64,000 nt of DNA from Paragordius varius (taxonomy: Eukaryota > Animalia > Nematomorpha), in assembly GCA_964247055.1 (NCBI GenBank), contig OZ176051.1, positions 13,020,001 to 13,084,000 of the forward strand. Direction: 5' to 3'. This document shows positions 4,215-40,800 of the stretch, in pieces. The notes beneath the pieces were generated by a model that saw only the letters and a program-made list of their open reading frames with translations, had not been told where the DNA came from and searched no databases. Made by a program: the position numbers and the translations under genes. Numbering within the stretch: the first letter of the stretch is position 1; each line of letters starts with the position of its first letter.

Positions 4215-5000
4215 TAATTTTTACCTGTATATATCAATGTAACACAAATATATAGTGATAAATAAATTAGCAAGGTTGAACAAAAATAAAATTTACTAAT
4301 TTAATAAAAACCGCAATTTACACAAGTTTTTAAATGTCCAAAATATTTAGTAATTAATTAAAAAACAATGATACAAGATACAAAAAATGTTACATTTGAA
4401 ATTTGTTAAAAACCGCCATTTTCACCTGTATATTAAAATTTCCAAATAAATATGTAGTAATTAATTACAATTAACAATATTAAATAAAAAAACAAGAAAA
4501 TATTAAATTTTTACTAAATATAAAAACAACCTCATTTTTTACCTTTATTAATTAAAATGTCGAAAATTAATTAATTACAATTAACAATGAAAATCCTCTA
4601 AAACAAAAAAATTAAATTTTTACTAAATTTGTTAAAAACCGCAATTTTTACCTGTAATTATTATAATGTCCAAAATATGCAGTAGTTAACAATTAACAAT
4701 GCAAAACCTAAAAAAACAAAAAAACTAAATTTTTACTAAATTTGTTAAAAACCGCAATTTTTACCTGTAATTATTAAAATGTCCAAAATATGTAGTAGTT
4801 AATTACAATTAACAATGCAAAACCTAAAAAAACAAAAAAAACTAATTTTTACTAAATTTGTTAAAAACCGCAATTTTCACCTGTATTAATTATAATGTCC
4901 GAAATATGTAGTAGTTAATTACAATTAACAATGTTAAGTAAAAAAAATAAAAAAAATTAAATTTGACTTAATTTAAAAAGCGCAATTTTTACCTGATTAA
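4215..5000 (-). repeat. Reverse-complement copies of the ~117-bp subrepeat in right foldback arm
   Basis: ttaaaaaccgcaatttttacctg recurs at ~4635, 4745, 4860, 4975, with degenerate copies further left. There are fewer copies than in the left arm. Confidence 0.85.
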
Positions 5001-9945: not shown

Positions 9946-9959
9946 TTTAAACATTTATA

Positions 9960-14618: not shown

Positions 14619-14691
14619 ATGTGGATGTGTGGAAAGCAGTTAAACACTTTTGTGTTTAGCATGCTAATGTTATTGTCTTTCCAGGCTTTAA
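14619..14691 (+). CDS. First coding exon, signal peptide
   Basis: MWMCGKQLNTFVFSMLMLLSFQAL then A|gtaagt (consensus donor). Phase 1 joins exon 14819. Confidence 0.75.
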
Positions 14692-17600
14692 GTAAGTTGC
14701 TCCTTATAAAATTACCAACCATATATTTTTGAAACCAAATAATTTAAATTTAATATTTGTAAAAATCTTAAACATTGTTGATGGCCCAATTTTTATAATT
14801 TTATTTACCACCTTTTAGACATTAGCAGTGTTAATCATAAAATTTGCGATGTCGTAACCAAAGACGGTGATTACGATCTTAACGATATCGTGGATTCCTA
14901 TTCACCCCATTGCCAGTAATTTTTAATAATATTATTAATAAAAAAATTTTAAATAGAATTTGGGTATTTTTTGAATGTTTTTGTTAAAAAATAATTTTAA
15001 CTCATTTTTTGAAAAATTTAAGTGGTTGATAACCATCTGCAATAGAAGTTTCAATTATTTTATTTGTTGTTGTATAAATATTGTAGCCGTCGGCCTCTTT
15101 CTAAGAAATTAATTAAAATGAATTAATACTAAATTCTTATTAAGTTTTCTAAACCTCTAGTTAACATAATTAGATTTTTTATATTATTAATTCAAATGTA
15201 TATTTAGATTTTGTGTAAGTGAAAAGCAAATCTTTCTTTTCTCTTTTATCCATAAAATTTAGATAATATATTGGGATATGATAATCAAGAATGAATAATA
15301 TATAAATATATTGTTTGTATAATTAGGGGTAAATTACCATTGGAGAGACGAAATAGCACAATCATATGGCGCATTCCAAGGGAGGACATCTTTGATCAGA
15401 AGTTCGCCTACAGCGTCATGACGACAATCTATTTCCTTCGGACCGAATTTAACATCAGTGTTTATGCTGATGCTAACGTAATTTATACATATCTAACTAA
15501 CTAATTACCTAAGTTTTTTTAATTTTAAAAATACTACCTCTAAAAAATATATCATTTTTCCACAATTTTAAATTGTAAGGGGCCTGAGAATAATTAGTAT
15601 ATATAGACATTGGAAATTTTCAACATTTCATCGCTTTACTGCTTCGCGGAAACTTCCGATTTACCAATTATAAAATTATTATGGGTTTTTTTACAAATGA
15701 ATAAAAAATCTATATAGAATTAAAATTAAAATAATGCAATTTGTTACATAACGCTTAAACAAAAGGTGTGATGTTTTATGAACATAATCTTTAAAAAACA
15801 TTATAGAACGCAGCCATATTAAAATTATGGGAACTAACCTTAAACTTAATATTATCTGTATTTTCATAAAACAGTAAAGAATATATTATAAATTGGTAAA
15901 TCGAAAAAAATAACTGTTTAAATCAGATTTTTCTCCCTTTCTTTATACGCTAAAAATTTCCTGTACGACTACTTTCTTATATTCTTTTACACATTTTACT
16001 TTATTTGCCAATTCAAGCACAATTAGACATTAGAAGTTATTCATTAATTTTTGCCAGATAGATTATATAACAAAGAACAAAAATAAGAAGTTTTTTCACT
16101 TTACAATTATTAGCCAATAATAATAATTTCTTAGTAGAATATGCGATCCGGCAATAATTAATAAAGAAATTAGCCATTTATTCTTACACGTAGTATACAT
16201 CATAAAAAATATGTATTATAATTTTGTTTGAAAAATTGGATTAAACAGCTCACAATGAACCTTGACCTGTTTTGTGTATTAACGAAAATCGTAGGGTAAT
16301 TGCCCAAAATAAAAATTGGATAAAATTACTAGGTTTATTTGTATATCTATTTCTGACCTTGATCTCTTTTATTTGCAATACCCCTCCCCCCCCTTTCTAT
16401 AAACTATGAATTGACTAAAGGGTAATTTAAATTGTAAGGTCGCGTTTGCTTGGTACCCTCTTTATAATATTGTTTATTTAATAGTTCAATGGTATGTACC
16501 TGCAAAGAAAGAGGGCTATAATAGAATCAAATATAATTATATAAGTTATTTGATTAATATATATATAAATAGATTTTTCGCAGAGAATGGTTCACTAAAA
16601 ATTATATTTAAGGCAAATATTGATTATTATTCAAACCATTGTCCATTTGATAGTGAAATCATTAATAATTAAATGCAAAATTAATTTTAAAAAGTATAAA
16701 AGTTATATAATCAAAGAATATACTTACACAGGATCTATTTATTTTAGGATGATAAAATGGCTTTTAATATTAATAAAACGCATAGTATCATAAGGAAAGT
16801 ATTTACAAATTCTCATAAATGTTAGCAGTTTTTTAATCGCATATAAAAGTTTCATTTTCAAAACTTAACTTCAAATTATTACTCTATTATATTTCAATTT
16901 CTGTGTATGAAGTGGCAAATCCAATAATATGCAAAACGGTTTTAAAAATAAATAGGAAATCTGATTGAGTAACTAACATAATAGATATATCAATAAAAAT
17001 TTTATCAGTTATATATGGATATGATCTACACAGTATTAATGTAATTAGGATTAATTCTATACATACCATGAATTAAAAATTAACCTTAATTTTTTAAAAG
17101 TTGATATTTAATTTGGTTTAAAAGCAAAGGTGAAATTTTTTTGGAAATATGTTTCAATAAAAAATATATAAAAAATAGGTTGGTGGGTATCTTGCATAGT
17201 CTTAAAATATATCATGAAATTTGTCATATGATCTAAAAAAATTTTACCAGTTTAATTAGATAATTCAAAAACAATTAATGATGCTAATAATTTAAACTAA
17301 AAACTTGCTATAATTTAATTTAGACTAAATTAATTAAATGTAATTAACTATCTATTCTAGCATATAATAAATTTTTAATAATTATTTGGCTAAATATTTT
17401 TTTAAACATTTTTGAAGTTTATAGTCTGCATAAATAAATTTTCGAAATTTAAATGTTAACATTATTTAGCACACTCGGATAAATTTTTATAAAGCCCTAA
17501 GCCATTTTCAATTATTTGAAATTATCAATCATTAAAAATAAATACCGTTTGAATTGCGAAAAAACGCCTTACACTTACCCTAAAATTATCTTTAATATTG

Positions 17601-20600
17601 AAATTAAATTCATAATCACTTGTAATTGGTATCATTAATGTTATAGTTTAAATTTAAAGTAAATCTCCAATTGACTGAATATTAAACCAAAAATAAATGC
17701 CAAAATGATCTTAAATTCATATTATATAATATTTTTGTACTATGAAAAACATGTTGTTGAGTAAATGTGCATGGCTAGTTTTTTAATAAATTTAGCCAGA
17801 TAGCATACGCAGCAGAGAGCATTTTAATTAGCTAATGCCCACTAAAAAGCGAAAAAATAACTATAGCCCAATTATATTGGTGTTTCCTTTCGTACGTTAT
17901 CCTAAACAACTAGCACTGTATATTTACTACTGTATTTTAAACGATTATTTTACTTTTTGTTCTTTTGGTCCCAATTCATAGCAACCGTTTACCACTTGTA
18001 TGTAGCTTTAAATTATAAATAGTTGTAAAACCATGTATAAATTTAAGATTTAAAAAGTAATTATAATTTATAATGTGCTTGCATTCATAGTATTTAGCTG
18101 TTTATATTTAAAAATAATATAAATGAGTTCAGGGGCGCCTAACAAAACCTTTATTTATTATAACATAAATACACTTTATATTATTTTATATTTATATAGT
18201 TCGCTCTTGAGGCCTTGCCTAACCCTCCGCAAATCAGGAAGGTGGCATTTTGTCGTCTCGTTGTGGACGATGATGTGTTCCAAGATTGTTTCTACCCTAG
18301 CCAAGTTCGAGATATCGTAAGCCAATTTTTTGATATATCTCTTAACAATTTCTAAAAATTAAATATAGATGCTTAATTCCTGACAAACCCCTTTTTTGTG
18401 ATGAACTTTAAACTCTAAATTACTCTTGATAACTGTCTTTCAATAGGTTTGAAAATCATTTGCAAGGGGTAATATAAATAAAATTCGCTGGAACCGACTA
18501 ATATACCTAAAAAATGTACGCTATATATATATGCATGCAATATATGACACTCTAAAATGAAATAAAATTCATTAGAAAACGCTCCGTCAATTGAATACCT
18601 CGATCGAAGCCACGCCCGCTGATGCTATATCAACTCCCCTGGACAACAGCTATATAATTCGTGCAAACAAAGAAGTGTATAACTTGATTGGTGGTCAATA
18701 TCAAATCAATGTTATAATTGCCGAATGTGATGGTAAAATTTATATATTGATTGCTTTTTCCTGTTAGAAACTGTATTAATAGTACCATCTAAATTAATTT
18801 TATATTATTTTATATGTCTAGCTGCACCAACAATCGGTAGTATTTTAATTAAAAATGACAAATATTGAATTGGTCAACTTTTGTCCAAATCTTAAGACGA
18901 AAAAATTCAATTATTTTATTGAAACAAATTATGTTAATATTTGTTATGTTATCAAATTGCATCACTAAAAAACAATACCCATATTAAAATATTTTTCAAC
19001 GAGAATGGTATAAATAGAAAATAATTGGCTAGTAAATATGGACAAAATATTTTAGATTAAACATTTAATATGGAAATAAATAAATATAAATTTTTTTAGA
19101 AACAACAACAGAACCAACACCAACCCCCATTATTACCACTGAAAGACCAATAGGTAATTGATAATAAAATTTTTTGAAATAATTTGATGCCAAAATGTGA
19201 TTTTTTTCTAATATACCCATTTAACTGATTTTCATATTTTACTGTACCGAGCATATCGAGCATTATAATAGGCCACATCTCTATATTAAATCCCTAAGGG
19301 TATTTACATGTCAGCCGCAGTATATGAGATTTTTGTTTTAATTAATTACTTATAAATTAAACACTATTTTTTCTCCTGAACACAATAAGTAACTCCTAAA
19401 AATGAAAAATCTCATATATGGCTACTGAAATTAGTTAGCTTTTTAACCATTTAAAAGACAAAAATAGCCTTTTTACTGCAATCAAATATAGGCTAATATG
19501 TAGTTAAATATGAAAATTGTTTTTACATCAAGATGATAAGTTTAATCTAAAATCAAAGATAAAAATATCTCAATTTAATATTTTAGAAACAACAACAGAA
19601 CCAACACCAACCCCCATTATTACCACTGAAAGACCAATAGGTATTTGATAATAAAAATTTTTGAAATAATTTGATGCCAAAATGCGATTTTTATAATATA
19701 ACCATTACTAGTGTAACTGATTGTTTTATATTTTACAGTAACGAGCACTATTATAGGCAACATCTCTATATTAAATGGAGGGCATTTAAAGTGGCCATAT
19801 ATAACTTCTGTTTTTATTTGTAACTTTTATATTATTCACTGTATTTTTTCTCCTCAATCACAATAAGCTACTAAAAATCTCATACATGGCTACTGAAATT
19901 AATTACCATTTTAGCCATTTAAAATACAAACATAGCCTTTAATTTACTAAAAATATAGGCTATTATGTAGTTAAATATAAAAATTGTTTTTACAGATGAT
20001 AAGTTTAATCTAAAATAATCAAATATAACAATATTTTAACTTGATATTTTAGAAACAACAACAGAACCTACTCCAACCCCCATTATTACTACCGAAAGAC
20101 CAATAGGTATTTGATAATAAAAAATTTTAAAATGATGCCAAAATGCAATTTTTTCTAATATAACCATTAATTTAACAGTCTAACTGATTTTTTATTTTTG
20201 GTTATAAGAAAAATATTATATAAGGATTCTAATGATGCGTTTTTTGGGGCCGACAGTTTATCAAAGTTAAATCCACTTGTGTATTTGTCAACCAAATAGA
20301 ATGATTTAAAGCATTTTGAAAATTAGATGCCGAGATTGTGGAAACTTTACACATGCTATTTTATTAAATATTTGTATTAAACAAATAATTTTTGATTTCA
20401 TTAAATTTACGGGTACTTTCCTACCCAATAATATATTTTAATATAAACTACAAATACCGATACGATTGGATTAAATTGAAACACATGCATTGATGTTGAT
20501 AAAATAATTTATCGATGAAATAATATTTTAAAAATGTAAAATTACTAATTAACTGACAAATTTAAATAAATTAATTGTAAAAAAAATTATTATCAGTTTA

Positions 20601-23600
20601 TTATTCAGTTTAATAGCACAGGGCAATTAAAAAAATCGCTTTTATATAGTACTTATGATATTGGATCTTTATGGTTAAAAAATAAAATTAAAAAAATCTT
20701 GATCTCAATGAGTCGTTTTTTAATATTTTTAACCAACTTAAGAACTGAGCAAAGAAAAATATATTATGGTAAAAATAAAATTTAATTCATCTGTCAAGTG
20801 CTGTAAATTTCTTTAGAATTTAACTGTTTTTCTAAAATATAATTATAATTTCTATAATAATGAGGTTGTGAGATATAATTTATCATGTTTACATAAAATC
20901 TTTAAAGGTAATTGTTACCGAGGACTTCTTTAATTTCCACTTTAAAACCCAACTGTCTCCCTAACATGAGACAAATTAAATATCTTAAACATAATTTTTT
21001 TCAAAAGTCAGTTAGATAGATGGTTCAGACTTCGCTTGCTGAAAAATAGTGGCTTACGGGCTAACTTTTAATCGTGATTATGCATTATATAGATAATTAT
21101 ATCTTAGATATTATATAAAAATAGCATCATTAGTACCCTGACTTTTATATCATATGATGAGATAATATAAAAACGAACTTGATTAACTCAGCCTTACGAC
21201 AGAATAATGTAAAGATCGTAAGTTATGACGGGAATTAATTCATGGTTATAAAACTCCGAATCTGGAGTCCTGACATTTTCCATCCATTTACTTTCTAAAG
21301 ATATTTAATAATTTCTAATTTTAATAATTTTTATAATTCATAGAAACAACAACAGAACCAACGCCAACACCCATAATTACTACTGAACGACCAATCGGTA
21401 TATTTAATTCTTAATATATTTATAACATATATAATTAAGAATCAATTTTAAAATAATTATTTGGTTATATAAATTTTACACATAGAAACAACAACAGAAC
21501 CAACACCCACACCTGTACTTACCACAGAATGGACCCTAGGTTATAAATTTAAAGCATTATTTAAAACAATGATTTAATAAAATTAACACTTGTGGGATAT
21601 AAAATATATTCTAGTGTAATGAATAAAAATATTTTAAAAGTACAAATGATATCATCACATAACTTGAATGTAAATCATAGCGACACACAATTCTCTAAAA
21701 TTTAAATTATATATGGGCATGTGCTCGATTTTTGATAGATTGATAATAAAATTTTGTTATTTTAAAATTGATATTATTAATTCATATTTCTGAAGTGATA
21801 TAATCATGAGAAAATTTTTTATAAAGATGGTTTCCAGGATGCTCCAAAAATACAATAAAATACGTTTTAATCTAAAATTTAAAAGTATATTATGCATCTT
21901 TTGATAATGTTTTTATTGATATATTAATATGCATATGGCTCTCGCACTTTGATATATCGTTTATTCTGAAAATTTTCTATATCCATTTCGGCGCCTAATG
22001 TATAATTGAAAAATTTAATACATTATCAGGACTGATGTATTTTAAAAATAAATATATATCTAAATTTTGTGGACATTGTGTAACATACATTTTTGTTTGT
22101 TCCTCATTATATGAAAACTTTTTTTTCAATAAAATATTAAATTTTCCCTACTAACTAAAACTATTTGAACTTTAAATAGCTAAGAAAAACATAAAAATGT
22201 ATTATAATATAATGAATTATAGTTTAATTATTTATGTTGATTTATGATAAAATCCAATATAAGTTAGCCTTTGTTTTTAAATACTGTCAAGATAGAACTT
22301 TGTAAAATTAAAAAAATATTATAAATATATAATATCAATTGTAATATTTTAGATAATTCCTTATTAAATTTTTGCGTTACCCCAAATTAAATTTAATTTA
22401 CCTATATTATTTATTTACATTTTATATAATTTGTATAAATGTATAGAATCACCATCTGGAAATGAAACTACTCCATGTAAGGACTTTTAAATTTAAATAT
22501 TTATTTAAAATATTTATGATATGAATTATATTTTTTTAAATTTTTTTATTTAAGTACCCTCTACAACATGGCCAAGTAATTTATCCAAAACTTAAATATA
22601 TTAATATTTTTATATGTTAATAATTAATATATATTTTAACTTTTATCTTATAGCATTACCTACGCTGCCAACAGGTTTGAATGCATTATAGTTTTTTATT
22701 AAATTAACACTTGAATACAACACATTCATTTCAATCCTTCGATTTAATTTGGGGTCGTTGGATACCCCAAGCTTGTTTATTATTAATATACCATTTACAG
22801 TTCAAGTTCACCCTTAAACAATTCAAATTCACCCTTGAACAATTCAAAATCACCCTCGAACAATTCAAATTCACCTTCAAATAAATAACATATTTTTTAA
22901 GCTTAAAAATTACCTATATTTTAATATATTTTTAAAAAATAAATTTTGTTTTAAATTAAAATAATACTGAAAATAATAATTAATTATACCATAAAGATAT
23001 ATTTTATATTAATAATGAGTTATATTAGTTCGAAAACACATAATTTATTTTTAGGGTGAATTTGAATTGTTCGAGGGTGAATTTGAACTGTAAATGGTAT
23101 ATTTTAAAAAATAAGTATGTTTTTTAATGATTTGCATATATGACATTAAAGTAGGATTCACAAAAGTGTATGGAAAAAAGAAAGGAAAAAATTGCTTATT
23201 CAACACATTGTTGTTTTTTCCATACACTATTGTGTTGCCAATTTCCCAACTCTAGTGTGAAATAAGCAATAGAATGCATATTGTATTGTTATATGTAATT
23301 TTAATAAAAAACTAAACTTAATTTTAGCCTTAAAATTAAACAAAGATATATAGCAAAAATATAATGAAGCCTCGAAGTAATTTGATACGGAACTTTTTCA
23401 AAATTTAATTTTATTAATTTTTTTACATTGTTTTTATTTGGATAGTAGCAAAAATTTAAATTATACCGTTTCTTTCAATAATTTTAAATATCAACTTAAA
23501 TATTGCCTGGGGTATTTAACCCCAATTTGGATGGAAGTGTTAATATTTCAAATATAAACATTAACTTTTTTGTTAAAATTTTAGGCAATACAGATCAAAC

Positions 23601-25920
23601 AACAAGTCCTGGACGTAATAATTATTATTTTATTGGCATTTCTCTTTATTTTTTAGATTATATTCAATGCATATTTTAACTTATTCTCATATTTAGCTGG
23701 TGTGTGTGATTTAGTTACAAAAAATGGAATATACAATCTTAAGGACTTGGTTAGTTCGCCTTCATTGAACAGCAAGTAATAACCTTATATTTTTCAAATA
23801 TATATTCAATAAATAATTTTTGTTTTCTTGAATAATTTACGGTAAACTCATTTTATTCCATATATATATATATATATTGCCCACGCATAATATTAGTATT
23901 GAAGTCAGCGTAGAACGAAACAATATGCAGCAGTTAATTGCTGTCCTACCCAACAATGATGTCTTTAACATTTATGATGGCAATAATGACACCGATTCTG
24001 AAACTCATCTCCGGGCTTACAATTTCCTGACCACGATCCTTTTTATGCGCTCCAAATTTTACGTTGAACTTATGGCCGACAGTGATGTAAAACATTTTTA
24101 TAATAAACTAAAGAAAATTAGTATTTGCTATAGGGTTTGTTGGCAGCTAGTATTGCATACTATTAATATTTTAAGTTAATAATAATACTATGTACAGTAA
24201 ATTAATTTAGTTGAAAGCGTCTCGATATACTTCCCAAACTTCTAGGATTTTAAGTTAAGATTAAACTACAGGTCTTCAAAATCTGAATTATGATGAGAAA
24301 TTGTAAATCTTTTAAAAGATTTGGTTGGTGATAAGGTACATCATATTTACATCTTCAGAGTAAAGCTAATAAATATTAAGCTAACACAACCCCCTAAAAT
24401 AACTGTCTCAGAAAAAAGAGAGTAGAGATAATAACGAAAATCCTAGAAGGTTGGGAAGTATATCTACTTGAGACACTTTCAACCCTTTTCAAGGATAGTA
24501 ATTCACAATTCAAATTCACCCTTAAACAATTCAAACCACCCTTGAACGATTCAAACTCTCCCATAAACAATTCAAATTCACCCTAAAACAAAACATTTGT
24601 TTTTTTAAGATTAAAAATTATCTATATTTTTTACAATTTAATTTTTAGAAAGTTTGTTTAAAAATTAAAATTATCCTAAAAAATTAAAAAAACCAAGCTT
24701 ATATCATTTAATAATGAGTTGTATTAGCCCGAAAGTTAATTTTTTTAGGGTGATTTTTCAGATATACTTATTATATTATACTGTTTTATCTGCTTTTAAA
24801 ATTTTATGCGTATTTTTTGCATTCTCTAGTTGGAATTAATTAGAAAGGAAACGAGCGATCAAACTTCAATAGCTTTATGCTGGATTGTGTACGATTCTAA
24901 CCCTACCCTCAGATCTGAATGCCTATATCCACAAGAATTATATCAAATTGTAATTATTATTAAGACTTTTAAAATTTTATTTATTTTTGTTTTTATTGCC
25001 CGAATGTTAAATGTAAATAATAACATTTATAATAAGCGGATAAACACGTTTTCATTCTTTTCTTCATGATCGTGTTTTTTTGTTTTATATTTGAATTCTC
25101 GCATTTGAGTGCTAACAAGCATTAAAATAATCTCTGAAAAAAAAAAGATTATTTTAATTTATTTTTGCATTACAAAATTAATATAATAATGTAATACGGA
25201 ATTTTCAATTATATCTGACAATTTACATAATTTTTTGCCTTTTGATTGTAGATAAGTGTAAAACAATACCCCACCCATGTTGAAATAAAGAAACAAAAAA
25301 CGAATGGTATCGTTACTGAACGCGTTGAAAACGTTTTCATTATGAGAGTTAACATGAAATTTTTCAATGTTAAAGGCCATTCACATGAGCTAAGATTGAA
25401 GTTTATTGATTGTTCCGGTAAGTTTTTGGAATGTAATTAAAATCATTTTTTTTAAGGATAATATTTTAGTATGGGACAATTTTTTTTGATTATTATAAAA
25501 TCTAAACTCCTAATTTATGTATATATATATTAGTTTTCACAACAACGACCCAGGAAATCGGTACATATTTCGTATAGTTTATTTTTTATAAACATATTCA
25601 ATCACATTAATATTTTAATTTTTATATATTATCTGTGTCAAATAATATGTTATAGTTTACACTTCAACTTTGGAATCAACTGTTTCAGATGTAACAATAA
25701 CAGTACCAAGCGGTATAATTTTATTTTTATAAATATATACTATGTAATAATTTTGTAAAAATTTGATATAGTTTAGTATATTTAGCCACTATAATTTCTT
25801 TTTTAAAAAATAAATTCGTTTTTTCTTGAAATTTTATTTTGAATCTCCTATAATTGATTGATTGAGAGAAATGATTTTCTACATTTTGCGGGTGAAAAAT
25901 AGAAGTTTTGGCAAAGTTTT

Positions 25921-25975
<55 letters not shown>

Positions 25976-28900
25976 ATTTATATATAGAAGGGACAACAAC
26001 AGTACCTATCCCAAGTAATGTCCATTTACTATTTTTAATATAATCTTTTTTTGTGCAAAATATTACCTACCCTTTTAAATCACTACTAATTTTACATGTT
26101 ATAACTCATGTTTGCATGCTTTGAAGGCGGTGATATCTGTGATTGGATGACACAAAATGGAAACTATTCCATTCAAACCATTGTTCAATCAAACTCTGCT
26201 ACTTGCAAGTAAATACTGACGTTATTTTTTACTTGATTTTAAGGAGAATTTGTGCGAATACGTAAAAATATGAAAAATTAAAATATAAATGATATTTATC
26301 TGCAACTTAAAATATAATCTTGTTTTATGTCAGGTATACGGCTTGACCGGGTACATTATTACAGTCATGTATCCTTAATTTGATCAAAAATTTATTTTTC
26401 TGTTAAATGGGAAGTATTTGGTAAGGAATGGAAAAAACAAAAGCTCTATGATATTAACAATATCATATTTATCGAAAAGTATAAGAATTACCATAGAGCT
26501 CTTGTTTTTTCCATTCCTTACCAAATACCCATTTAACGTAAAAAAAATAAATTTTTAATAAAATAAAGGATACATGACTCTATATAAATAAACCAAAAAA
26601 TAATTTGCTCCCTATAATAATTTATCTACTGTTTTATATGTTAAAGGGGTACATTATATTTGGAACGCGTTGACCAAAAAATAACATGGATAATTGATAA
26701 CCCAGACATTTTTCAAATGTTTACACCGCTTACGAATGAGAGTTACTCCAATGCCTATGATATTTTAACAACAATCTTTTTCCTGAAAACCAAATACGAT
26801 ATTTCCTTCAAAGCAACTAGCAATGTATATCTTTATTCAACACTATATAATTAAGAATCAAATCTAATTAGAAAATGTTTTATAAATAATATATAACATA
26901 TAAATGTGCTTTGACCGATTCGAGTTTAATATTTTTATTCAGTAACGGTTTAATCTTTTTGCATTTTTTACATTTTCGGTGGGATCGAATATTGAAAAGA
27001 AAACAAAAATTTCCGAAATAGCGTAAAATATTACATTGTCGTAATAAATAAACATTTTCCCCTTACACCCGAACATTAATTTTTTTAAATTTATTGCAAA
27101 CAGAGTTATACACCCCCATGCCACTATTATTGATAATATATATTAAATATAATTTTTGTCATATTAGCTTGTGTTAAAACCCCGCGCAGGCGCAAGCAAC
27201 GATGACATTGCCATGTGCAAAATTGTTATGGAATCGGAATTATATACAGAATGCTTGTACCCGGAAGATTTGGCTAACATTGTATGTTATATGAGCATAT
27301 ATTTGTATTGTTGTTGATTACTTTTAGCAATTTGTGTGAGGGGGCATGCATACCAAATATATGATATTTGACAAGCTTATAAATCTATTTTAATTAAGTC
27401 TAAGGTCTGATTATCATGCCATTTCCTATAACATATAGGTAATTAGTATCTTTTGAATTAAGACCATTAAAGTATATAAAATACATAACATGTAATTATA
27501 AATCACCATTATGAAAGACATATAATGCAACGGTATATTGTATTTTGCGATTATAATTTTATAAATTTACAGGAGAGTATTAGACAATTGGAAGATGGAA
27601 TCGAATATGTCGTGAAAGAGAACGGAAAATCGGTTGTAAAGAAATGGGAAAATAGTTTCATAACCAAATTGAACAAAGAAGCCTTCCAAATTGAAGGCTC
27701 CGTTCATAAATTTGATATTATCCTTAAGGATTGTGGTAAAATACTTTGTTTAATGTAAAGGCAAATCAATATCAACCCAACAAAAATTGTTTTGTTTAAA
27801 TTCACCTTTAAATAGTTATGATGTTTAATTCAAAAATAAATATTTTAATCTATATATTAAATGGTTATACCTTTTTTTTTTATAAAAAACACGATGATGC
27901 ACTTCAAATTGTTAATTATTTATTAGATAATTTGATTGTAAAATTTGATAATAATTTTAGATGAAAGCCGAACCACAACAGTAAGTACCACAACATCGAT
28001 CATGGAAACTACAACTTGTGATCCAAGTATATAAGTTTTTTCATTCACTTTGAAATACATAAAACGCTGCATTCCAAAACTGTGTGTACTCATAGCTTAA
28101 TTTTTTAGGGGGAAAATAATCTTAAACTGTTTATTTGTTATAATTAGGAGATAAATAATCTTTCCTGGTAATTAAATATCTAATTTGTCAGTAGGATCAA
28201 TAAAATGTTGTTTTAATGGATATTTTGAAAGTAATTCTTTAGACCAGGGGTGTCAAACAGATGGTTCTTGAAAATTTTGAATGGCTCTTAAAAAAATTAA
28301 AAATTTTTTTTTTGCAAAATGGTTAATTTTTAAGTGGCGATGTTAAATTTAAATTTTGTAAAAAATAAAAATTCTAAATTGTTTTACATAAAATTTTTTA
28401 TAATTTTTTTTATAATTTTTATCACATTTATTTAATTATCATTTCCTTTGAAATTCGAATATCTAAAATACTTGCTTATGGCTAACTTTTTTTGGTAATT
28501 ATTTAGTGAAAGGCCATATTTCTGAAAAAGACAGTCCCATTATTAATATAATCTATATTATTGGAGTTTAAATTACTTATTCGATTGATAATTGTTAAAC
28601 TTGATATTATTAAAACATCTATATGATTTATATTAATCCAAATGTGGCTCTTTGGATTTTTGGGGTCGAAATAACTCTTAAGCCATTTTTGTTGGGTTAC
28701 CCTGCTTTAGACAAAATATTTTTTAACATTCCACAAAAGGAAACAAACTTTAAATACTTCTATTTAGTCAGTAGTTTTTTGAATTGGGAATTGTAAATCA
28801 TAGATTTTAAAATTTAAACATTAAAAAATGATAAAAGTCTAGCATTGAAGCAAATCATATCATATAACATTTTTTAATTCGCTATGGCCATTATATGTGG

Positions 28901-31783
28901 AAATTAGTTTTATTTTGTGAAAAATAATATGAGTTATTTGGGTTGAAATGTAATAAAAATATTTACATATTAACGTATATTTCATATAACTAAATTCAAA
29001 AAGTTATAGCATATATTATATATATTATATATATATATAATATATATAGATACTGATCCATGTGAGATTGTGAAATCAAATGGAAATTATAATTTAAAGA
29101 AACTTGTTGGTTGCAAATCCCCATCATGCGAGTATGTATACTAGTTTACTTAAAAATTAAACGACAATAAGCAATATTTCTTGTGTCTGTGAAATATTTT
29201 TCCAATATATTTATCATCTCTGTAAACCTTTTACGTTTTAAAGTAACAAAAATGTTTTTTTTGTTCAAAAAGGCTTATTTTAACATCCACTCTGTTTGCA
29301 ACTTTTTTAGTTATATTTTACTCCATCTCTAATAGCATAAATATTAAGATTTTAGCGTGTTTGATTAAACCTTTTTGGACAAAATCCTCATTATGAACTT
29401 TTTAAGTACTCTTTTGATTTTATGAAATATATAATTGCATGTTTTGCATGAACACAAATTTATAACGAATTAAAAAAACAGCTGGCTCTTATTTAGTTTT
29501 TTTGAGTCTCCCTATATGAAATCTTACTCTCATTTTTTGAAGGTGGTGTTATTCATAAATGCGAAAATTATAAAAAAATTGACACTAGTTTGTGTAACTG
29601 ATTAATACAATAAGCTTCTTAAAAAATTTATGCCTTATATATTAAAAAGTAATTGCATAATAGCGGAAGTAACTTATTTTTACTTTTTAAACTCCATATA
29701 ATATAAATATTTTAATTAAAAAACGAAATAAAAACATTTATCCTGAGTTTTTATAATTAAATTTTTTATGTTGACAATTTATCATTTAATTTTTTGATGC
29801 CATTTAAGATATAATGACAACTTTCGATTCACCCAAAATAATATAGAAATAGATTATCTACATCAATTTGTATAAAAAATAGTATTAATATATCAATGGT
29901 TGTGTAAAAATAATCCCTATTTTCGTTTTGCTAGCAAACACTTTTTCATATATAAAACACCCAACTATCGTGATTTTTTGGGGAATTATTGCGGTTTATC
30001 AAAATTATGCAAAAAATATAAAAATTATGCATTTTTCAAAAATATTTTTTCTGTTGTCAAAATAGAGCATATTTTAATATTATCGCAAATCTCGTGGCGT
30101 TTGTTTTGAGAAATTAATTTCGGAGGAGGTGAGTTGACTTCTAAAAAATCAAATTTAATTATAACATTACTTTGTTGCTTTTAAATAATAGCTTATAATG
30201 TATTTGTTTTTTCCATACACTGTGTTGCAAATTGCCCAACTATAGTGTGTAATAAGCACCCATTAAAATGCATAGTAATTTTAAATGAACCATTAGTTAT
30301 TACCTAAAATATTTTATTTAGTATGACGTGCAATTTTGAATTTTTGATATAAAAAATCACAAAAGTTGTATTCTTAAATTATTCCCAAGGTTCAAAAATT
30401 ATGAGATTGATGCACTCTATCAGAATATATACATATATTTTGTATCAATAAAATATTTTTACACCCGATTTGTCAACTGTATTATGCTATTTTTTAAATA
30501 AAAGCTTAAGGCTTCCTTTTAAAAAATATCATTAAAATATAAAATAAATATAATTAAAAAGACCAAAATTTTCATGTTAACCATTTGCGCTTCGAGATTG
30601 TCCTTTCTATGGCCCTTGAACATAACAAGTATCCTTTAACACTTCAAGTTCTTCAACCTAATAAGTTTAGCGTTAACTATTGTTGAATGACTAACTTGAA
30701 TTAGGAATAACTTGATGTTGACCATGAAATGTTCAAGGACCGAAGCGTTCAAGAACACTCTTGAGGTTTAAATGGTATAATTTGTAAAAAAAGTGTATTT
30801 TTAAAGCAAATATATTGCAAAAACTTTTCTTTTGATCGCAATATCGGTTGAGTTTTCTAAAGAAAACTAGCTCATTTGAGGGCCCATATTTTAATTTCGG
30901 AGGTCTTGATCTAAACACCTAAAGTAAATAGTTGCTTTTTATTTGATATATCAAGAATTTTAAAATAATTAACTTCCACCAAAACGGATAATGTGCCAAA
31001 ATTTTGGAAATAACTTTCTAATCACCCTAAAGTCCCAAGACCATAGCCATCAAGATAATGCCGATGTTCTCACTATAGATCATCTGTATATTATTTTTGA
31101 CTGAATATAATATAAACATCTGAGAGTATACCTCAGAATTAGTTTTTTTAATTCAAATTCTCCTCCAAACTTATATTTGAATGTGATTGCAAAAATATTA
31201 ATAGTTATATGCCTTTTAGAAATATATAAAATCCCTATACATACTTTGTTAATAATTTATATTATTCTTTATCAGACATGAGCTATATTTAGAAAGAGAA
31301 AATGGAAAGGTGGTATGGCCAATCGGAAATTCAAGCGATTTTTTTAAGATTTTGGGGGATGGAAATATCGAAAATCAGGAATTATACGGAACCTTAACAA
31401 TACTTTTCTATATTAGATCAAAATATTATTTGACATTTCAAACAGATAGCAACGTATTACTTACAAATAATATTAGGTTGTATTGACCCCTAGAATTAAA
31501 AGCAACAATGACGAAAAAATCATGTGTCTTTTATTCATTGAAAAACATATATTTACGGATTGTTATGAAGCAAGAGAATTAAAAAAAATAGTATATTATA
31601 TAAATAATATTAGAACAAAATATATCAAGATAAAATGGATGTTACAATGGAAACAGATGGGACAATAAGGCGGATAAAAAATGCCTATATAGTATATTTG
31701 AAAAGAGATGAATTCGATATAACAGGAACAATGCACAAATTGGATATAATAATAAAAGAATGTGATGTAACGACAACTGGTAA

Positions 31784-31814
<31 letters not shown>

Positions 31815-34800
31815 CGTCTTTTATGAATTGGCTAGCCATTGAATCCGTATAGACCCGGATTCTAACACAAATGGTTTAATAATTTCGGCAGGTTGCATAT
31901 GCAATATAGATGGGCTTCATAATAAATCATTAAATTTTAAACATAAACTGCAAAATGAAAATGAATGCAACAATTTTTTCTCATTTTTGCTATATGGATG
32001 GACTCATTTAAAAAAATGCCTAATATTAATTTACTAAGATTTGAGCCTATTTTTGCAAATTATGGTTTCCAAAATTTCGCGGGCCGCACACAAAGTCTCG
32101 AAGGGCCATGTGTTGGCCACCCCTGGCTATAGACTATAGAAATTGTCTGTAATATTAACGATCCTACCAGGTGTTAGCTTCAATTTAGCAACTCTTTTAT
32201 TTTTTTCTCGGCTAAAACTTTCTACCTCTACGATTGTTTCCATCAGGGTATAGGGATAAAATTATTTTTTCATTGATATGAAGCACGCTTGATGTGTCCA
32301 AAATACCCCACTCTATTTCTTATGAATATTATATTTAAAAATTTAAATTGGTAGAGTTGGTGCTAGTTTGAATCCGAATTATTGGAGTCAAATAATTATA
32401 ACATTCACTTTTCCATCATGTTTTCTCGATTGAATCTGTCATTGATAATACGATTTTATTGATTTATGGGAAACCTGCTTTGTAGACCAGGCCTTTGTTT
32501 TTGCATATATATGTTTATTTTTGTAAATTGAGTTTATGGTATTTTACTCAAGCCTGTTGGGATAGTGATTTGTCTGTTTCACCTAAGCAAATATGACATT
32601 TCCCAAATTAAAATTGTTAACCACCTAAGGTAATTTAGGGAAGTGGGTGAGGCATTAGTTTTTTTGCATGATTTGGATAAAAATTTATCATTAATGATTA
32701 ATCTTTCTTATAAGCAAGCACTTTTTGTATACCCATTTATTGCAAGGTGTGCATAGTATTAAGTTAATTGTTTATATTTACATATTCCACCTAGAAACAT
32801 AGCTGTTTTACCCTTTATTAGCACCTTTGTTTTGCTTATTTTTATCATCATTGTACCCATAGGGTCATATTAATGCGTTTTTTAATTTAATTCCTTCATT
32901 TATGTTGCGAATGAGAACGATCACAGATAAGTTCCGATGATGGGCCTTATTTTATATCTTTTGTAATTAATCCATTATTAATATGATAATATAGATTTTT
33001 AATGAAGCCCTGACGCGTTGACAAAAGCTGTGCCTAGTGTTTATATGACGCAGTTTGTTGTTTTATAGCATATCATTTCTATTGATTTAAACTAATCATC
33101 TACGTTGTTGTATCCCAGTGTGGATGGTATTAACTTCCTGAGGATATTACAGCAGAGTGTAGGTCTATAAAATGTGATATTTTTATATTTTGGATAAATC
33201 TTAAAATATTTTAATGAAAAAACATATCGTGATACTGTTAGGTATGCATATTGAGATTTATGTATGCTAGATTGATCTCAGGATTCGATAATAGATCCGA
33301 ATCTCTTGTTTTTACAAATGGGTATAATAGTATTTTTTCAATCTTTAGGACAATTTGCCGACAGGATTTAGTAACATATAAATCCGTCAAGGTCTTCAAT
33401 ATTAAAGGTAGCCGAGGATGTAGGATTAGATTTTGGATTTCCAAGAGGTTTAACAAGTCGCATCTTTTAGTTTTATGTCTAGGAAGGTTTGATCATTCAT
33501 TGTGAAACAGGTTTTAGTGAAATGTCCTGGTCTCGATCTTGTAGAAAGATTGCAGTATAAGCGATTATCAGATGGTCTGGTAAATGTTCCGTGCCAGTTT
33601 TACCGGCTCTGATGTGGTATTCGAAATCAGGGATATAAAGATTTATGGGTTAAATTTATTTTGAAAGCTGTAAAGTTACTATTAAAGGTAGACGCTTAGT
33701 TTTTTTGATATCGATGCAAAATTGTGATGTTTAATTTTTTCACTGGTCATTCAGCGCCATAAGTTAGGGCAGGTCGTATGATTCTAGTAAATATTTTCCC
33801 TTTACTTTCAAATATATTTATCATTTAAAATCTGTTTCAATAAATAATATTTCCCCAAGCTTCTTCTATGTTTAGGCTCTATTGATTAGATGTAGACATT
33901 GTGGTATAGCTTTTTGTTGTCGGAGTTGAGTTCATATGGACCTGCTGCTTTATCATTTTCTCTTGATTCATCTCTTACAGTGTTTGTTAGGTATTGGATT
34001 GTTGGTGGTTGGTTTATTGGATTAAAATTTGTGTTTCCATGAATTATTTTCGGTAATATGTGATCCGGACATTGTTATGTCTCTCTAATCAATTGATATA
34101 TTTTTATTAATCTTAATATAGACAACCTGTTTAATGTCCTTTTCAATATTGTTAATACATTTACTGTTCTAACAATCTTAAGATTTTTGTCTAGTTTTAG
34201 TTTTTAGGTAAATCTCAAGGTTTTTTGTTGACTGAAATATTAAATTGCTCTAAATTTTTATTTTATCTGATATATGGTTTTAAGTCCCTTTTTCTTTTCT
34301 TTTGTATTATTGATATTTATTAGAGGTTTTAGATTCTGACAACCACCAATTATGTTGTTATTTCCGGGATGTTTTCTTTATGCCACAAAACAGTATATTG
34401 GGAAGATGTTGTTTTTAAGATTATTCCAATTTTGAGATGTTTGTTGGATAAGGCTAAGCGTTGCATTAACATTTTGTGAGAGTTTAACTTTTACATCTGA
34501 AAGGTGTTTTCTAACTTTATTTTTATTTTTTAGTTGTGACGCCAACGACGACAGGATCACCTTTCAATACAACAACAACGGCTTCAACACCTATAACCAC
34601 ACCATCGGGACAAACAACTCCCTCTGGTCAAACAACTCCATCTGGTGTAACTACACCATCTGGTGTTACAACGCCTTCAGGGGAAACCACGCCCTCTGGA
34701 GCAACAACCCCATCTGGTCAAACAACTCCTTCCGGCTTAACGACACCTTCTGGTGCAACGACTCCATCTGGTGTTACAACGCCTTCAGGAGCTACCACGC

Positions 34801-37800
34801 CATCTGGACAAACAACTCCATCAGGACAAACTACACCATCAGGAGCTACAACGCCATCAGGTGAAACTACACCTTCTGGACAAACAACTCCTTCCGGTCA
34901 AACCACTCCATCAGGTGCTACAACGCCTTCAGGAGAAACAACGCCATCCGGGCAAACAACTCCATCTGGTCAAACAACTCCTTCAGGTCAAACTACACCA
35001 TCAGGAGTGACCACACCATCGGGTGAAACTACACCCTCTGGTCAAACAACGCCGTCTGGTGAAACGACTCCTTCAGGTGCAACTACACCTTCCGGTCAAA
35101 CAACGCCATCCGGTCAAACCACTCCTTCAGGTCAAACTACACCATCTGGTCAAACCACTCCATCAGGTGCTACTACGCCCTCTGGTCAAACAACTCCATC
35201 AGGTGCTACTACACCTTCCGGTCAAACAACTCCATCCGGTCAAACAACTCCTTCAGGTCAAACTTCACCATCTGGTCAAACCACTCCATCAGGTGCTACA
35301 ACGCCTTCAGGAGAAACAACGCCATCCGGTCAAACAACTCCATCTGTTCAAACAACTCCTTCAGGTCAAACTACACCATCAGGAGTGACCACACCATCGG
35401 GTGAAACTACACCCTCTGGTCAAACAACGCCGTCTGTTGAAACGACTCCTTCAGGTGCAACTACACCTTCCGGTCAAACAACGCCATCCGGTCAAACCAC
35501 TCCTTCAGGTCAAACTACACCATCTGGTCAAACCACTCCATCAGGTGCTACTACGCCCTCTGGTCAAACAACTCCATCAGGTGCTACTACACCTTCCGGT
35601 CAAACAACTCCATCCGGTCAAACAACTCCTTCAGGTCAAACTACACCATCTGGTCAAACCACTCCATCAGGTGCTACAACGCCTTCAGGAGAAACAACGC
35701 CATCCGGTCAAACAACTCCATCTGGTCAAACAACTCCTTCAGGTCAAACTACACCATCAGGAGTGACCACGCCATCGGGTGAAACCACTCCATCAGGTGC
35801 TACTACGCCTTCTGGTCAAACAACTCCATCAGGTGCTACTACGCCTTCAGGTCAAACAACACCATCTGGTCAAACCACTCCATCAGGTGCTACTACGCCT
35901 TCTGGGGAAACAACGCCATCCGGTCAAACAACTCCATCTGGTCAAACAACTCCCTCAGGTCAAACTACACCATCTGGTGTAACCACTCCATCAGGTGCAA
36001 CTACACCTTCCGGTCAAACAACTCCATCTGGTCAAACAACTCCCTCAGGGCAAACTACACCATCTAGTGTAACCACTCCATCAGGTGCAACTACACCTTC
36101 CGGTCAAACAACTCCATCTGGTGAAACAACTCCTTCAGGACAAACTACACCATCCGGAGCTACCACGCCATCGGGTGCAACTACACCTTCCGGTCAAACA
36201 ACACCATCTGGTCAAACGACTCCTTCAGGTCAAACCACACCATCTGGCCAAACTACACCTTCTGGTGTAGCCACTCCATCTGGTCAAACAACGCCCTCCG
36301 GTCAAACGACTCCATCAGGTGAAACTACTCCATCTGGTGTAACTACACCATCTGGTCAAACAACTCCTTCAGGACAAACCACTCCATCTGGTGTTACAAC
36401 GCCTTCCGGAGCTACCACGCCATCCGGTGAAACTACGCCTTCTGGACAAACCACTCCATCAGGTGCTACTACACCTTCCGGTCAAACTACCCCATCTGGT
36501 GCAACAACACCATCTGGTGAAACAACGCCCTCCGGTCAAACCACTCCATCAGGTGTAACGACGCCATCCGGACAAACAACTACTTGTCCGCCAAGTATTA
36601 AAAATATTTTTATAAAATTTTAGCCATTGATATATGTGAATTGGTGACGGAAAACGGTAATTACAGTTTGAGTGACTTAGTTGGGTGCACGTCTCCCTCT
36701 TGCAAGTATATTTACCTTTCTAAAAATTTATTAGGGATGATATTTATTTGGAACGCGATGGCGACAAAATTATATGGCCAATTGACAATCAAGACATCTT
36801 TGGTGTATTTAATCCATCTGACGAAGACCAAGAAGAATTATATCAAACTCTCACCATTCTTTTCTACCTTAAAACAAAATTCAATCTTACATTTATTGCG
36901 GATAGCAATGTAAGTCATATTACACAAACATTTATAAATATGAAATGTAAAACGTCCAATATATATGACATAATTTTTTTGAATATTTAGCTTGTATTGG
37001 TAACAAAACCAAACATCACGGATTACAATGAAATAGCAATTTGCAGTCTTTTCATTGAAAAGGATATCTATTCTGATTGCCTGTACCCACAAGATATTGA
37101 AGATAAGGAAATAGTATATAATATATGTTAACATTGTATAGAAACAAATCGAACAATTACAAAATGGAATCAAAATTACGACTAATAACGGCAATGAAAA
37201 AATTATCGAAAATGCTTTTGTCATTCGCGCTAACAAAGATGTTTTCGAAGTTTCTGGGGACAAACACAAGCTCAATATTGTCTTGATTGACTGCGCAAGT
37301 AAGATTCATAATGAAATATCGAAAAATATTGTTATCAGTAAATAGTTGTTTCATGCATTTATATTTGTTTTTCATATTAATACAGATGTAACGACAACAG
37401 GTATTTCTTGATTTTATTAATTTTTTAGTTGTGACGCCAACGACGACAGGATCACCTTTCAATACAACAACAACGGCTTCAACACCTATAACCACACCAT
37501 CGGGACAAACAACTCCCTCTGGTCAAACGACTCCATCAGGTGAAACAACTCCATCTGGTGTAACTACACCATCTGGTGTTACAACGCCTTCAGGGGAAAC
37601 CACGCCCTCTGGAGCAACAACCCCATCTGGTCAAACAACTCCTTCCGGCTTAACGACACCTTCTGGTGCAACGACTCCATCTGGTGTTACAACGCCTTCA
37701 GGAGCTACCACGCCATCTGGACAAACAACTCCATCAGGACAAACTACACCATCAGGAGCTACAACGCCATCAGGTGAAACTACACCTTCTGGACAAACAA

Positions 37801-40800
37801 CTCCTTCCGGTCAAACCACTCCATCAGGTGCTACAACGCCTTCAGGAGAAACAACGCCATCCGGGCAAACAACTCCATCTGGTCAAACAACTCCTTCAGG
37901 TCAAACTACACCATCAGGAGTGACCACACCATCGGGTGAAACTACACCCTCTGGTCAAACAACGCCGTCTGGTGAAACGACTCCATCAGGTGTAACTACA
38001 CCTTCCGGTCAAACAACGCCATCAGGTCAAACCACTCCTTCAGGTCAAACTACACCATCTGGTCAAACCACTCCATCAGGTGCTACTACGCCCTCTGGTC
38101 AAACAACTCCATCAGGTGCTACTACACCTTCCGGTCAAACAACGCCATCCGGTCAAACAACTCCATCCGGTCAAACCACTCCTTCAGGTCAAACCACTCC
38201 TTCAGGTCAAACCACTCCATCAGGTGCCACAACGCCTTCAGGAGAAACAACGCCATCCGGTCAAACAACTCCATCTGGTCAAACAACTCCTTCAGGTCAA
38301 ACTACACCATCAGGAGTGACCACACCATCGGGTGAAACTACACCCTCTGGTCAAACAACGCCGTCTGGTGAAACGACTCCTTCAGGTGCAACTACACCTT
38401 CCGGTCAAACAACGCCATCAGGTCAAACCACTCCTTCAGGTCAAACTACACCATCTGGTCAAACCACTCCATCAGGTGCTACTACGCCCTCTGGTCAAAC
38501 AACTCCATCAGGTGCTACTACACCTTCCGGTCAAACAACTCCATCCGGTCAAACAACTCCTTCAGGTCAAACTACACCATCTGGTCAAACCACTCCATCA
38601 GGTGCTACAACGCCTTCAGGAGAAACAACGCCATCCGGTCAAACAACTCCATCTGGTCAAACAACTCCTTCAGGTCAAACTACACCATCAGGAGTGACCA
38701 CACCATCGGGTGAAACTACACCCTCTGGTCAAACAACGCCGTCTGGTGAAACGACTCCTTCAGGTGCAACTACACCTTCCGGTCAAACAACGCCATCCGG
38801 TCAAACCACTCCTTCAGGTCAAACTACACCATCTGGTCAAACCACTCCATCAGGTGCTACTACGCCCTCTGGTCAAACAACTCCATCAGCTGCTACTACA
38901 CCTTCCGGTCAAACAACTCCATCCGGTCAAACAACTCCTTCAGGTCAAACTACACCATCTGGTCAAACCACTCCATCAGGTGCTACAACGCCTTCAGGAG
39001 AAACAACGCCATCCGGTCAAACAACTCCATCTGGTCAAACAACTCCTTCAGGTCAAACTACACCATCAGGAGTGACCACGCCATCGGGTGAAACCACTCC
39101 ATCAGGTGCTACTACGCCTTCTGGTCAAACAACTCCATCAGGTGCTACTACGCCTTCAGGTCAAACAACACCATCTGGTCAAACCACTCCATCAGGTGCT
39201 ACTACGCCTTCTGGGGAAACAACGCCATCCGGTCAAACAACTCCATCTGGTCAAACAACTCCCTCAGGTCAAACTACACCATCTGGTGTAACCACTCCAT
39301 CAGGTGCAACTACACCTTCCGGTCAAACAACTCCATCTGGTCAAACAACTCCCTCAGGTCAAACTACACCATCTGGTGTAACCACTCCATCAGGTGCAAC
39401 TACACCTTCCGGTCAAACAACTCCATCTGGTGAAACAACTCCTTCAGGACAAACCACTCCATCTGGCCAAACTACACCTTCTGGTGAAACCACTCCATCT
39501 GGTCAAACAACGCCCTCTGGTCAAACGACTCCATCAGGTGAAACTACTCCATCTGGTGTGACTACACCATCTGGTCAAACAACTCCTTCAGGACAAACCA
39601 CTCCATCTGGTGTTACAACGCCATCCGGTCAAACAACTCCATCTGGTCAAACAACTCCCTCATTGCAAACTACACCATCTGGTGTAACCACTCCATCAGG
39701 TGCAACTACACCTTCCGGTCAAACAACTCCATCTGGTGAAACAACTCCTTCAGGACAAACTACACCATCCGGAGCTACCACGCCATCGGGTGCAACTACA
39801 CCTTCCGGTCAAACAACACCATCTGGTCAAACGACTCCTTCAGGTCAAACCACACCATCTGGCCAAACTACACCTTCTGGTGTAACCACTCCATCTGGTC
39901 AAACAACGCCCTCCGGTCAAACGACTCCATCAGGTGAAACTACTCCATCTGGTGTAACTACACCATCTGGTCAAACAACTCCTTCAGGACAAACCACTCC
40001 ATCTGGTGTTACAACGCCTTCCGGAGCTACCACGCCATCCGGTGAAACTACGCCTTCTGGACAAACCACTCCATCAGGTGCTACTACACCTTCCGGTCAA
40101 ACTACCCCATCTGGTGCAACAACACCATCTGGTGAAACAACGCCCTCCGGTCAAACCACTCCATCAGGTGTAACGACGCCATCCGGACAAACAACTACTT
40201 GTCCGCCAAGTATTAAAAATATTTTTATAAAATTTTAGCCATTGATATATGTGAATTGGTGACGGAAAACGGTAATTACAGTTTGAGTGACTTAGTTGGG
40301 TGCACGTCTCCCTCTTGCAAGTATATTTACCTTTCTAAAAATTTATTAGGGATGATATTTATTTGGAACGCGATGGCGACAAAATTATATGGCCAATTGA
40401 CAATCAAGACATCTTTGGTGTATTTAATCCATCTGACGAAGAGCAAGAAGAATTATATCAAACTCTCACCATTCTTTTCTACCTTAAAACAAAATTCAAT
40501 CTTACATTTATTGCGGATAGCAATGTAAGTCATATTACACAAACATTTATAAATATGACATGTAAAACGTCCAATATATATGACATAATTTTTTTGAATA
40601 TTAAGCTTGAATTGGTAACAAAACCAAACATCACGGATTACAATGAAATAGCAATTTGCAGTCTTTTCATTGAAAAGGATATCTATTCTGATTGCCTGTA
40701 CCCACAAGATATTGAAGATAAGGAAATAGTATATAATATATGTTAACATTGTATAGAAACAAATCGAACAATTACAAAATGGAATCAAAATTACGACTAA

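Follow-up and report, generated by a model that had tools for sequence, protein, structure and literature searches.

The 64,000-nucleotide stretch of DNA analysed here, which we call the window, comes from the horsehair worm Paragordius varius (Nematomorpha; assembly GCA_964247055.1, contig OZ176051.1, positions 13,020,001 to 13,084,000 of the forward strand), and it covers the 5' two thirds of a single, very large gene on the plus strand that probably encodes a secreted mucin. What characterizes this gene is a module of 172-181 amino acids, encoded in four GT-AG exons per copy, that is present 12 times inside the window. An earlier note, made from the letters of this stretch, had described an unrecognised domain of about 170 amino acids in 12 copies with a conserved four-exon structure, and all the exons of the 12 copies were indeed found in the places claimed for them by tblastn, profiles and motif scans (Table 1). 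Of the limits that had been set, 14819 is the base at which exon 1 of copy 1 begins and 37298 the base at which exon 4 of copy 5 ends. When the exon peptides of copy 5 were used as tblastn queries against the window, all exons of copies 1-4 were recovered, mostly at E values of 1e-4 to 1e-10, and when the whole 110-Mb genome was searched with profiles of exon 2 and exon 4 every copy was matched at E values of 1e-16 to 1e-30. In copies 1-5 the junctions were read base by base, and the phases, 1 (into exon 1), 2, 0, 0 and 1 (out of exon 4), are identical in these five copies, as had been proposed. The sizes of the introns range from 23 nt in module 4 and 28-29 nt in modules 5-12 up to 2.7 kb in modules 1 and 4.

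In the first exon of the gene the start codon is followed by a basic n-region and by a hydrophobic core of 12 residues, from which a signal peptide is inferred, and the exon connects in frame with exon 1 of module 1 at 14819. That the signal-peptide-like exon splices in phase to module 1, and that the modules lie between Thr/Pro/Ser-rich linkers and TTPSGx repeats, agrees with the extracellular nature that the earlier note had assigned to the module. The whole gene, as judged from the profiles and from reading of its tail, has 19 modules over about 74 kb and runs past the window end. The first four modules are old and diverged and are connected by short Thr/Pro linkers; they are followed by 11 near-identical units of 3.6 kb, eight of which are inside the window, and then by four diverged modules. 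Each 3.6-kb unit consists of a module, a mini-exon of five residues and a (TTPSGx)~150 exon. In the whole-genome search the exon-2 and exon-4 profiles detected five modules downstream of the window, and two further diverged modules were found when the tail of the gene was read (C2:13106880-13107903 and C2:13108102-13109034). The open frame of the gene terminates in ...KPIKDC, after which an unrelated immunoglobulin-like gene starts, and no transmembrane segment, VWD domain or cystine knot was seen in the C-terminal end on reading the tail.

Outside one exon class the G+C content of the window is 20-27%, and the genome of Gordionus montsenyensis is also AT-rich, with 26.9% G+C (bioRxiv 10.1101/2023.06.26.546503). 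From about 34.5 kb on, the prevailing element of the window is a coding repeat of 18 bp (periods of 18, 90, 126, 378 and so on) that on the plus strand reads TTPSG[QEAV]. There are nine long exons rich in Pro, Thr and Ser (PTS exons) in the window with 1,222 TTPS units, and these are the Thr/Ser/Pro-rich tandem repeats by which a mucin is recognised. The PTS exons that follow modules 5-12 have 790-960 residues each and end in ...QTTTCPP, the last one being cut by the window end.

Table 1. Exons and modules of the mucin-like gene, in positions of the window (s, first base of exon 1 of the respective module)
Feature	Position	Strand	Basis	Remark
First exon of the gene, with start codon and a signal-peptide-like stretch (MWMCGKQLNTFVFSMLMLLSFQAL)	14619..14691	+	sequence read directly	phase-1 GTAAGT donor
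Module 1	14819-14915, 15327-15477, 18200-18316, 18576-18732	+	tblastn, profiles, splice sites read	five Cys
Five short linker exons, each about ETTTEPTPTPIITTERPIG	19090..21574	+	open frames	approximate limits
Module 2	23697-23775, 23897-24089, 24830-24946, 25252-25417	+	tblastn, splice sites read	four Cys
Module 3	26127-26208, 26647-26827, 27168-27281, 27573-27735	+	tblastn, splice sites read	five Cys
Short Thr-rich linker exon ending ...ETTTCDPS	within open frame 27942..28031	+		approximate limits; holds the linker Cys before module 4
Module 4	29050-29131, 31276-31459, 31483-31590, 31614-31779	+	tblastn, splice sites read	NVTTT-type tail fused to exon 4
First long PTS exon	34534..36594	+		about 690 amino acids, 108 TTPS units, ends ...QTTTCPP
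Module 5	36624-36705, 36735-36909, 36991-37113, 37142-37298	+		introns 29, 29, 81, 28 nt
Mini-exon NVTTT after module 5	37386-37400	+		15 nt
Modules 6-12, exon 1 starts (s)	40239, 43890, 47541, 51174, 54789, 58404, 61533	+		within 37429..64000
Modules 6-12, exons	s..s+81, s+111..s+285, s+367..s+489, s+518..s+674		offsets from ungapped match to copy 5	
Modules 6-12, mini-exon	s+762..s+776	+		
Modules 6-12, PTS exon	s+805 to next s-30	+		

From alignments of 13-15 modules per exon a signature of four blocks was derived together with the pattern of Cys residues. In order, the blocks are C-x2-[VIM]-x3-G-x-Y, [LIF]-x-R-x3-4-[LIV]-x-W...[DE]-I-[FY]...S-[ND]-V, C-x10-13-C-x-x-P and Q...N-[SA]-[FY]...G-x2-H-x8-C. 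Modules 1-4 and the modules of the copy-5 type are 33-48% identical to one another, and dN/dS, the ratio of nonsynonymous to synonymous substitution rates, is 0.23-0.27 for the pairs with measurable dS, the synonymous sites being saturated or nearly so in the other pairs. Since 33-48% of the residues have been kept at a low dN/dS while the synonymous sites became saturated, these modules are old duplicates that have been maintained as protein. By these comparisons the module, with its four exons and about 175 residues, is a genuine protein domain under selection. Copies 6-12 are ungapped relative to copy 5 and show 3-6 mismatches in 675 nt with the introns included, which indicates a recent amplification or gene conversion of the 3.6-kb unit. 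A reading of the D-S-N and H motifs as a catalytic Ser, His and Asp was considered and rejected, because module 1 has A and Y at these places and module 17 has Q.

Each module has four invariant Cys, one in exon 1, two in exon 3 (C-x10-13-C) and one in the terminal D/E-C of exon 4 (H-x8-C), and the exon alignments show 0-2 extra Cys in exon 1, just as four invariant and some variable Cys had been described before. From this pattern a disulfide that closes the module end to end is plausible. One more Cys is found at the end of every long PTS exon, directly before the module. This linker Cys (TTTCP) and Cys22 of exon 1 are both present in modules 4-17 and both absent in modules 1-3, and their co-occurrence suggests that the linker Cys pairs with Cys22. 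Another Cys of exon 1, Cys27, is present in modules 1 and 3-17 (16 of the 19) and has no visible partner, the units that carry it having five or seven Cys; lacking a visible partner, Cys27 may be unpaired and could form inter-chain disulfides. The N-glycosylation sequons NYS, NLT and NIT that had been listed earlier are present in copies 5-12, and NVT is made by the junction of exon 4 with the mini-exon (37298|37386), as had also been noticed.

At least three other loci in the same genome carry the module, C2:10628755-10664061, C2:6388183-6388808 and C5:6270092-6270253, all on the minus strand. In these paralogues the four blocks are found in the same order, in separate exons or frames, and the locus at 10.63-10.66 Mb of C2 has several modules. 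When an eight-sequence profile of exon 2 with 59 positions was run against a library of 1.84 billion representative proteins, the sole match was XP_065322587.1, a 'mucin-22-like' protein of Gordionus sp. m RMFG-2023. Two Gordionus modules, taken as queries for word searches, matched only XP_065322587.1 and LOC135929787, an uncharacterized protein of the same species that has two complete modules, and a word search with the exon-2 alignment gave nothing within the length range searched. With LOC135929787 as the query no match was obtained in the Paragordius genome. Exon hidden Markov models (HMMs) built from the Paragordius genome only, matched both Gordionus proteins block by block and in collinear order, with scores of about 18-23, 16-22, 11 and 25-39 bits for the four exons. 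As these collinear matches add up to roughly 90 bits per module, the homology to the Gordionus proteins is secure.

Both Gordionus proteins have the four motif blocks in order, the core Cys, and Ser/Thr-rich linkers between the modules. They differ in that their modules are about 25-35% identical to those of the window and are closer to the paralogues at C2:10.6 Mb and C5; in the case of the 'mucin-22-like' protein, the modules of these two paralogous loci are nearer to its modules than the window modules are. Their linkers are SGESTVS-like as against TTPSGx in the window gene, and some of their modules have an extra pair of Cys in the exon-2 loop. The Gordionus gene models look incomplete, and the module is neither annotated nor named in them. 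Going by these searches, the module is apparently lineage-restricted and so far known only from horsehair worms.

The comparison of the module with known families was done exon by exon, and full-length modules entered it by way of the Gordionus proteins. In Pfam nothing was above threshold for any exon, for the stop-free stretch made of exon 2, intron and exon 3, or for the two full Gordionus proteins, and SEA, VWD, CUB, FReD, CysD/WxxW and the C-type and other lectin families were not listed even at E <= 10 for the exons and the Gordionus proteins. The matches below threshold were chance ones, to MC2, DUF4607, FkbH_N, S_locus_glycop, Cu2_monooxygen and DUF6081. Sequence searches of the PDB with LOC135929787 and with the exon-2 and exon-4 profiles gave nothing meaningful. 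The description of the module in the earlier note as new or very remote therefore holds as far as it was tested at the sequence level, that is in Pfam, among PDB sequences and in the profile search of the 1.84 billion proteins, and a match to SEA, VWD, FReD, CUB or a lectin, which would have spoken against it, did not appear in Pfam even at the relaxed E value. A literature search for published work on nematomorph mucins found none.

The architecture of the gene has parallels. In MUC16 (CA125) SEA domains of about 120 amino acids and PTS stretches occur in tandem in multi-exon, near-identical units, and the window gene resembles it in having many such units, in which folded modules are interspersed with stretches that would be O-glycosylated. 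It differs from MUC16 in that its module has about 175 amino acids and four invariant Cys, gave no profile match to SEA (PF01390) and, on reading of the alignments, does not have the G-S-[VI]-V-V autoproteolysis motif, and that no transmembrane anchor was seen. The functional analogy that we favour is to the CysD domains of MUC2, MUC5AC, MUC5B and MUC19, which are Cys-bearing globular domains that likewise interrupt PTS stretches. CysD has about 100-110 amino acids, 10 Cys and a WxxW motif and is thought to cross-link the mucin gel; the module of about 175 amino acids with its four invariant Cys did not match CysD/Mucin2_WxxW (PF13330), and unlike the gel-forming mucins the gene showed no VWD or CTCK polymerisation domain. 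The peritrophin-type mucins of invertebrates are comparable as secreted ecdysozoan mucins of the beads-on-a-string type. In these the chitin-binding CBM14 domain, with about 65 amino acids and 6 Cys, sits between PTS stretches, whereas the exons of the window module and the Gordionus proteins had no CBM14 match. The module is, then, an undescribed domain set in a mucin architecture of a known kind.

A structure was predicted with AlphaFold2 for the stop-free stretch of copy 6 that runs from exon 2 through the in-frame intron of 81 nt to exon 3, an artificial and partial construct, and the predicted local distance difference test (pLDDT) was 70-82 in the exon parts. In this partial model the L-E-R...I-x-W block is a beta-hairpin, a 21-residue amphipathic helix contains E-L-Y-Q-T-L-T-I-L-F-Y-L-K, and a second hairpin carries both Cys of exon 3. 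No structural neighbours of this partial model were found. AlphaFold2 on LOC135929787 with XP_065322587.1 had no usable alignment and gave a pLDDT of 30, and the atlas model of LOC135929787 has a pLDDT of 0.34. Going by the copy 6 model, the module is most likely an alpha+beta domain in which a helix would be packed on an antiparallel sheet.

The explanation that we consider best, to which we give a probability of about 0.55 as a whole, is that the locus is one huge gene for a secreted, sugar-coated mucin of the beads-on-a-string type and that the module is a disulfide-stapled knot, restricted to this lineage, by which mucin chains are tied to one another. The TTPSGx stretches, of about 150 hexapeptides each, would be densely O-glycosylated, stiff and hydrated rods, and the modules would be compact, N-glycosylated alpha+beta knots with two internal disulfides each. 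As the only folded parts, the modules would be the contact points between chains, and they could organise the chains into a gel or an adhesive coat as CysD does in the gel mucins of vertebrates. One unpaired Cys per module, Cys27 of exon 1, would allow inter-chain disulfides. Which tissue makes such a mucin is a guess, for which the jelly of the egg strings, the wall of the larval cyst or a coat of the body surface may be named. Several points weigh against this explanation. The disulfide pairing, the glycosylation, the cross-linking and the free Cys are all inferred, and the splicing model is built from conservation and GT-AG sites only. The large-library search used a profile of exon 2 only and could have overlooked remote relatives in other phyla. 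That the linker Cys and Cys22 occur together is based on only about four independent lineages on each side. Moreover, the count of Cys is even in the modules of the paralogues and of Gordionus, so that an unpaired Cys is not a trait of the family and would be specific to the window gene.

A bolder form of this explanation would be that the fold of the module is new and occurs in Nematomorpha only, and that Cys27, of which there are up to 16 per chain, links the chains into a covalent network in a mucin that has neither VWD domains nor a cystine knot. We regard this as quite unlikely. If the Cys27 network were true, mucin gels linked by disulfides would have been invented independently here, perhaps for the egg-string jelly, the cyst wall or an immune-masking coat.

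Among the alternatives to a chain-tying knot the one that survives best, while still unlikely in our judgment, is that the module belongs to a known extracellular fold from which it has diverged very far, and that it functions in the way of that fold. It could be an SEA-like alpha/beta sandwich as in MUC16, acting as a mechanical breakpoint or a protective module, or else a helix-on-sheet cup like that of cystatin or NTF2, or a galactose-binding-like beta-sandwich. The parallel in architecture with MUC16 speaks for such a fold, and the hairpin, the long helix and the several strands that are predicted are compatible with several helix-on-sheet folds. However, none of these families was found in Pfam with the exons and the full Gordionus proteins at E <= 10, the sequence searches of the PDB were empty, and an SEA cleavage motif of the G-S-V-V-V type is absent from the alignments. 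A language-model atlas did rank a cluster of Methyltransf_FA (PF12248), a beta-sandwich, first for one Gordionus module with a score of 0.87, but this is below the threshold of 0.9 for a lead, it was not reproduced with the second Gordionus module, for which there was no usable match, and Pfam gave no match to the family.

We hold it to be improbable that the module serves for binding, as a lectin or as a binder of host ligands, and not for cross-linking. Its ligands could be the mucin's own glycans, chitin, egg surfaces, or haemolymph and immune factors of the host, and the outcome would be a multivalent adhesive or immune-masking coat. Such a coat would fit with the nineteen-fold multivalency on a flexible scaffold and with the life of hairworms, which develop in the haemocoels of insects. 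Polar residues are kept across paralogues and species, namely the R of L-E-R, the S-[ND] at the end of exon 2, the Q and N of exon 4 and the H of H-x8-C, but none of them is invariant in the strict sense, as module 1 has A for Ser and Y for His and module 17 has Q for His. There is also no match to a lectin family, and what the diverged copies share is mainly hydrophobic positions of the core type and Cys. Lastly, that there is no functional domain here, and that the array is a satellite or comes from a transposon and has its open frames by chance, is hardly credible: copies 5-12 do form a 3.6-kb tandem array that is more than 99% identical with its introns, and the adjoining DNA is full of foldback and MITE-like (miniature inverted-repeat transposable element) repeats, yet the copies of 33-48% identity keep open exons, GT-AG sites and phases around introns that vary from 23 nt to 2.7 kb, dN/dS is about 0.25, and there are unlinked paralogues and an annotated RefSeq homologue in another species.

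The introns of the gene and the DNA upstream of it have features of their own. Module 4 has two GT-AG introns of 23 nt (31460-31482 and 31591-31613) in a gene that also has introns of 2-3 kb, and GT-AG introns of 28-29 nt are found at 36706-36734 and at the equivalent places in modules 6-12. The 81-nt phase-0 intron between exon 2 and exon 3 (40525-40605 in copy 6) is stop-free in copies 6-8, where its retention would keep the frame, and in copies 5 and 9-12 one base change gives a stop. Two arrays of a 21-bp tandem repeat (ACAATTCAAATTCACCCTTGA, about four copies each, in the same orientation) lie at 22797-22875 and 24505-24591, in the introns that flank exons 1-2 of module 2. In module 3, the intron between exon 1 and exon 2 contains a MITE-like insert (26360-26582, about 220 nt) whose nested inverted repeats have 40-nt arms that are 90-95% complementary. 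The intron of 2.7 kb that precedes the first long PTS exon (32000-34500) has a G+C content of about 32%, richer than its surroundings, and holds several open reading frames (ORFs) of 40-80 amino acids, none with a Pfam match. Upstream of the gene, a nested, foldback-like inverted repeat of about 3.3 kb lies at 1678-4980, with arms that are 85-98% complementary and consist partly of 116-118-bp tandem units. It is followed at 8520-11600 by a head-to-head palindrome of about 3.1 kb that is centred near 10050 and has arms 92-98% complementary. This palindrome has retroelement-like ORF fragments on both strands, for which there was no Pfam match, and a GIY-YIG-like motif (YIDESGRSLDVHLREH), recognised by eye only, that would suggest a Penelope-type element. 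This locus, with its introns of 23-29 nt and near-identical units of 3.6 kb, will probably be modelled wrongly by gene predictors.

Few animal phyla have been studied as little as the hairworms. This gene and the at least three paralogous loci indicate that these animals make very large secreted glycoproteins based on a domain that is missing from Pfam and, by the exon-2 profile, so far absent from all other organisms in the library of 1.8 billion proteins. If the module turns out to be distantly related to a known fold, it would still provide a useful annotation for the Gordionus 'mucin-22-like' protein and similar models. If it is truly a new fold or a new mode of cross-linking, it would join the small set of domains that organise mucins, namely VWD/CTCK, CysD, SEA and CBM14, and it would give a molecular handle on the egg strings, cysts and surface coats of hairworms.

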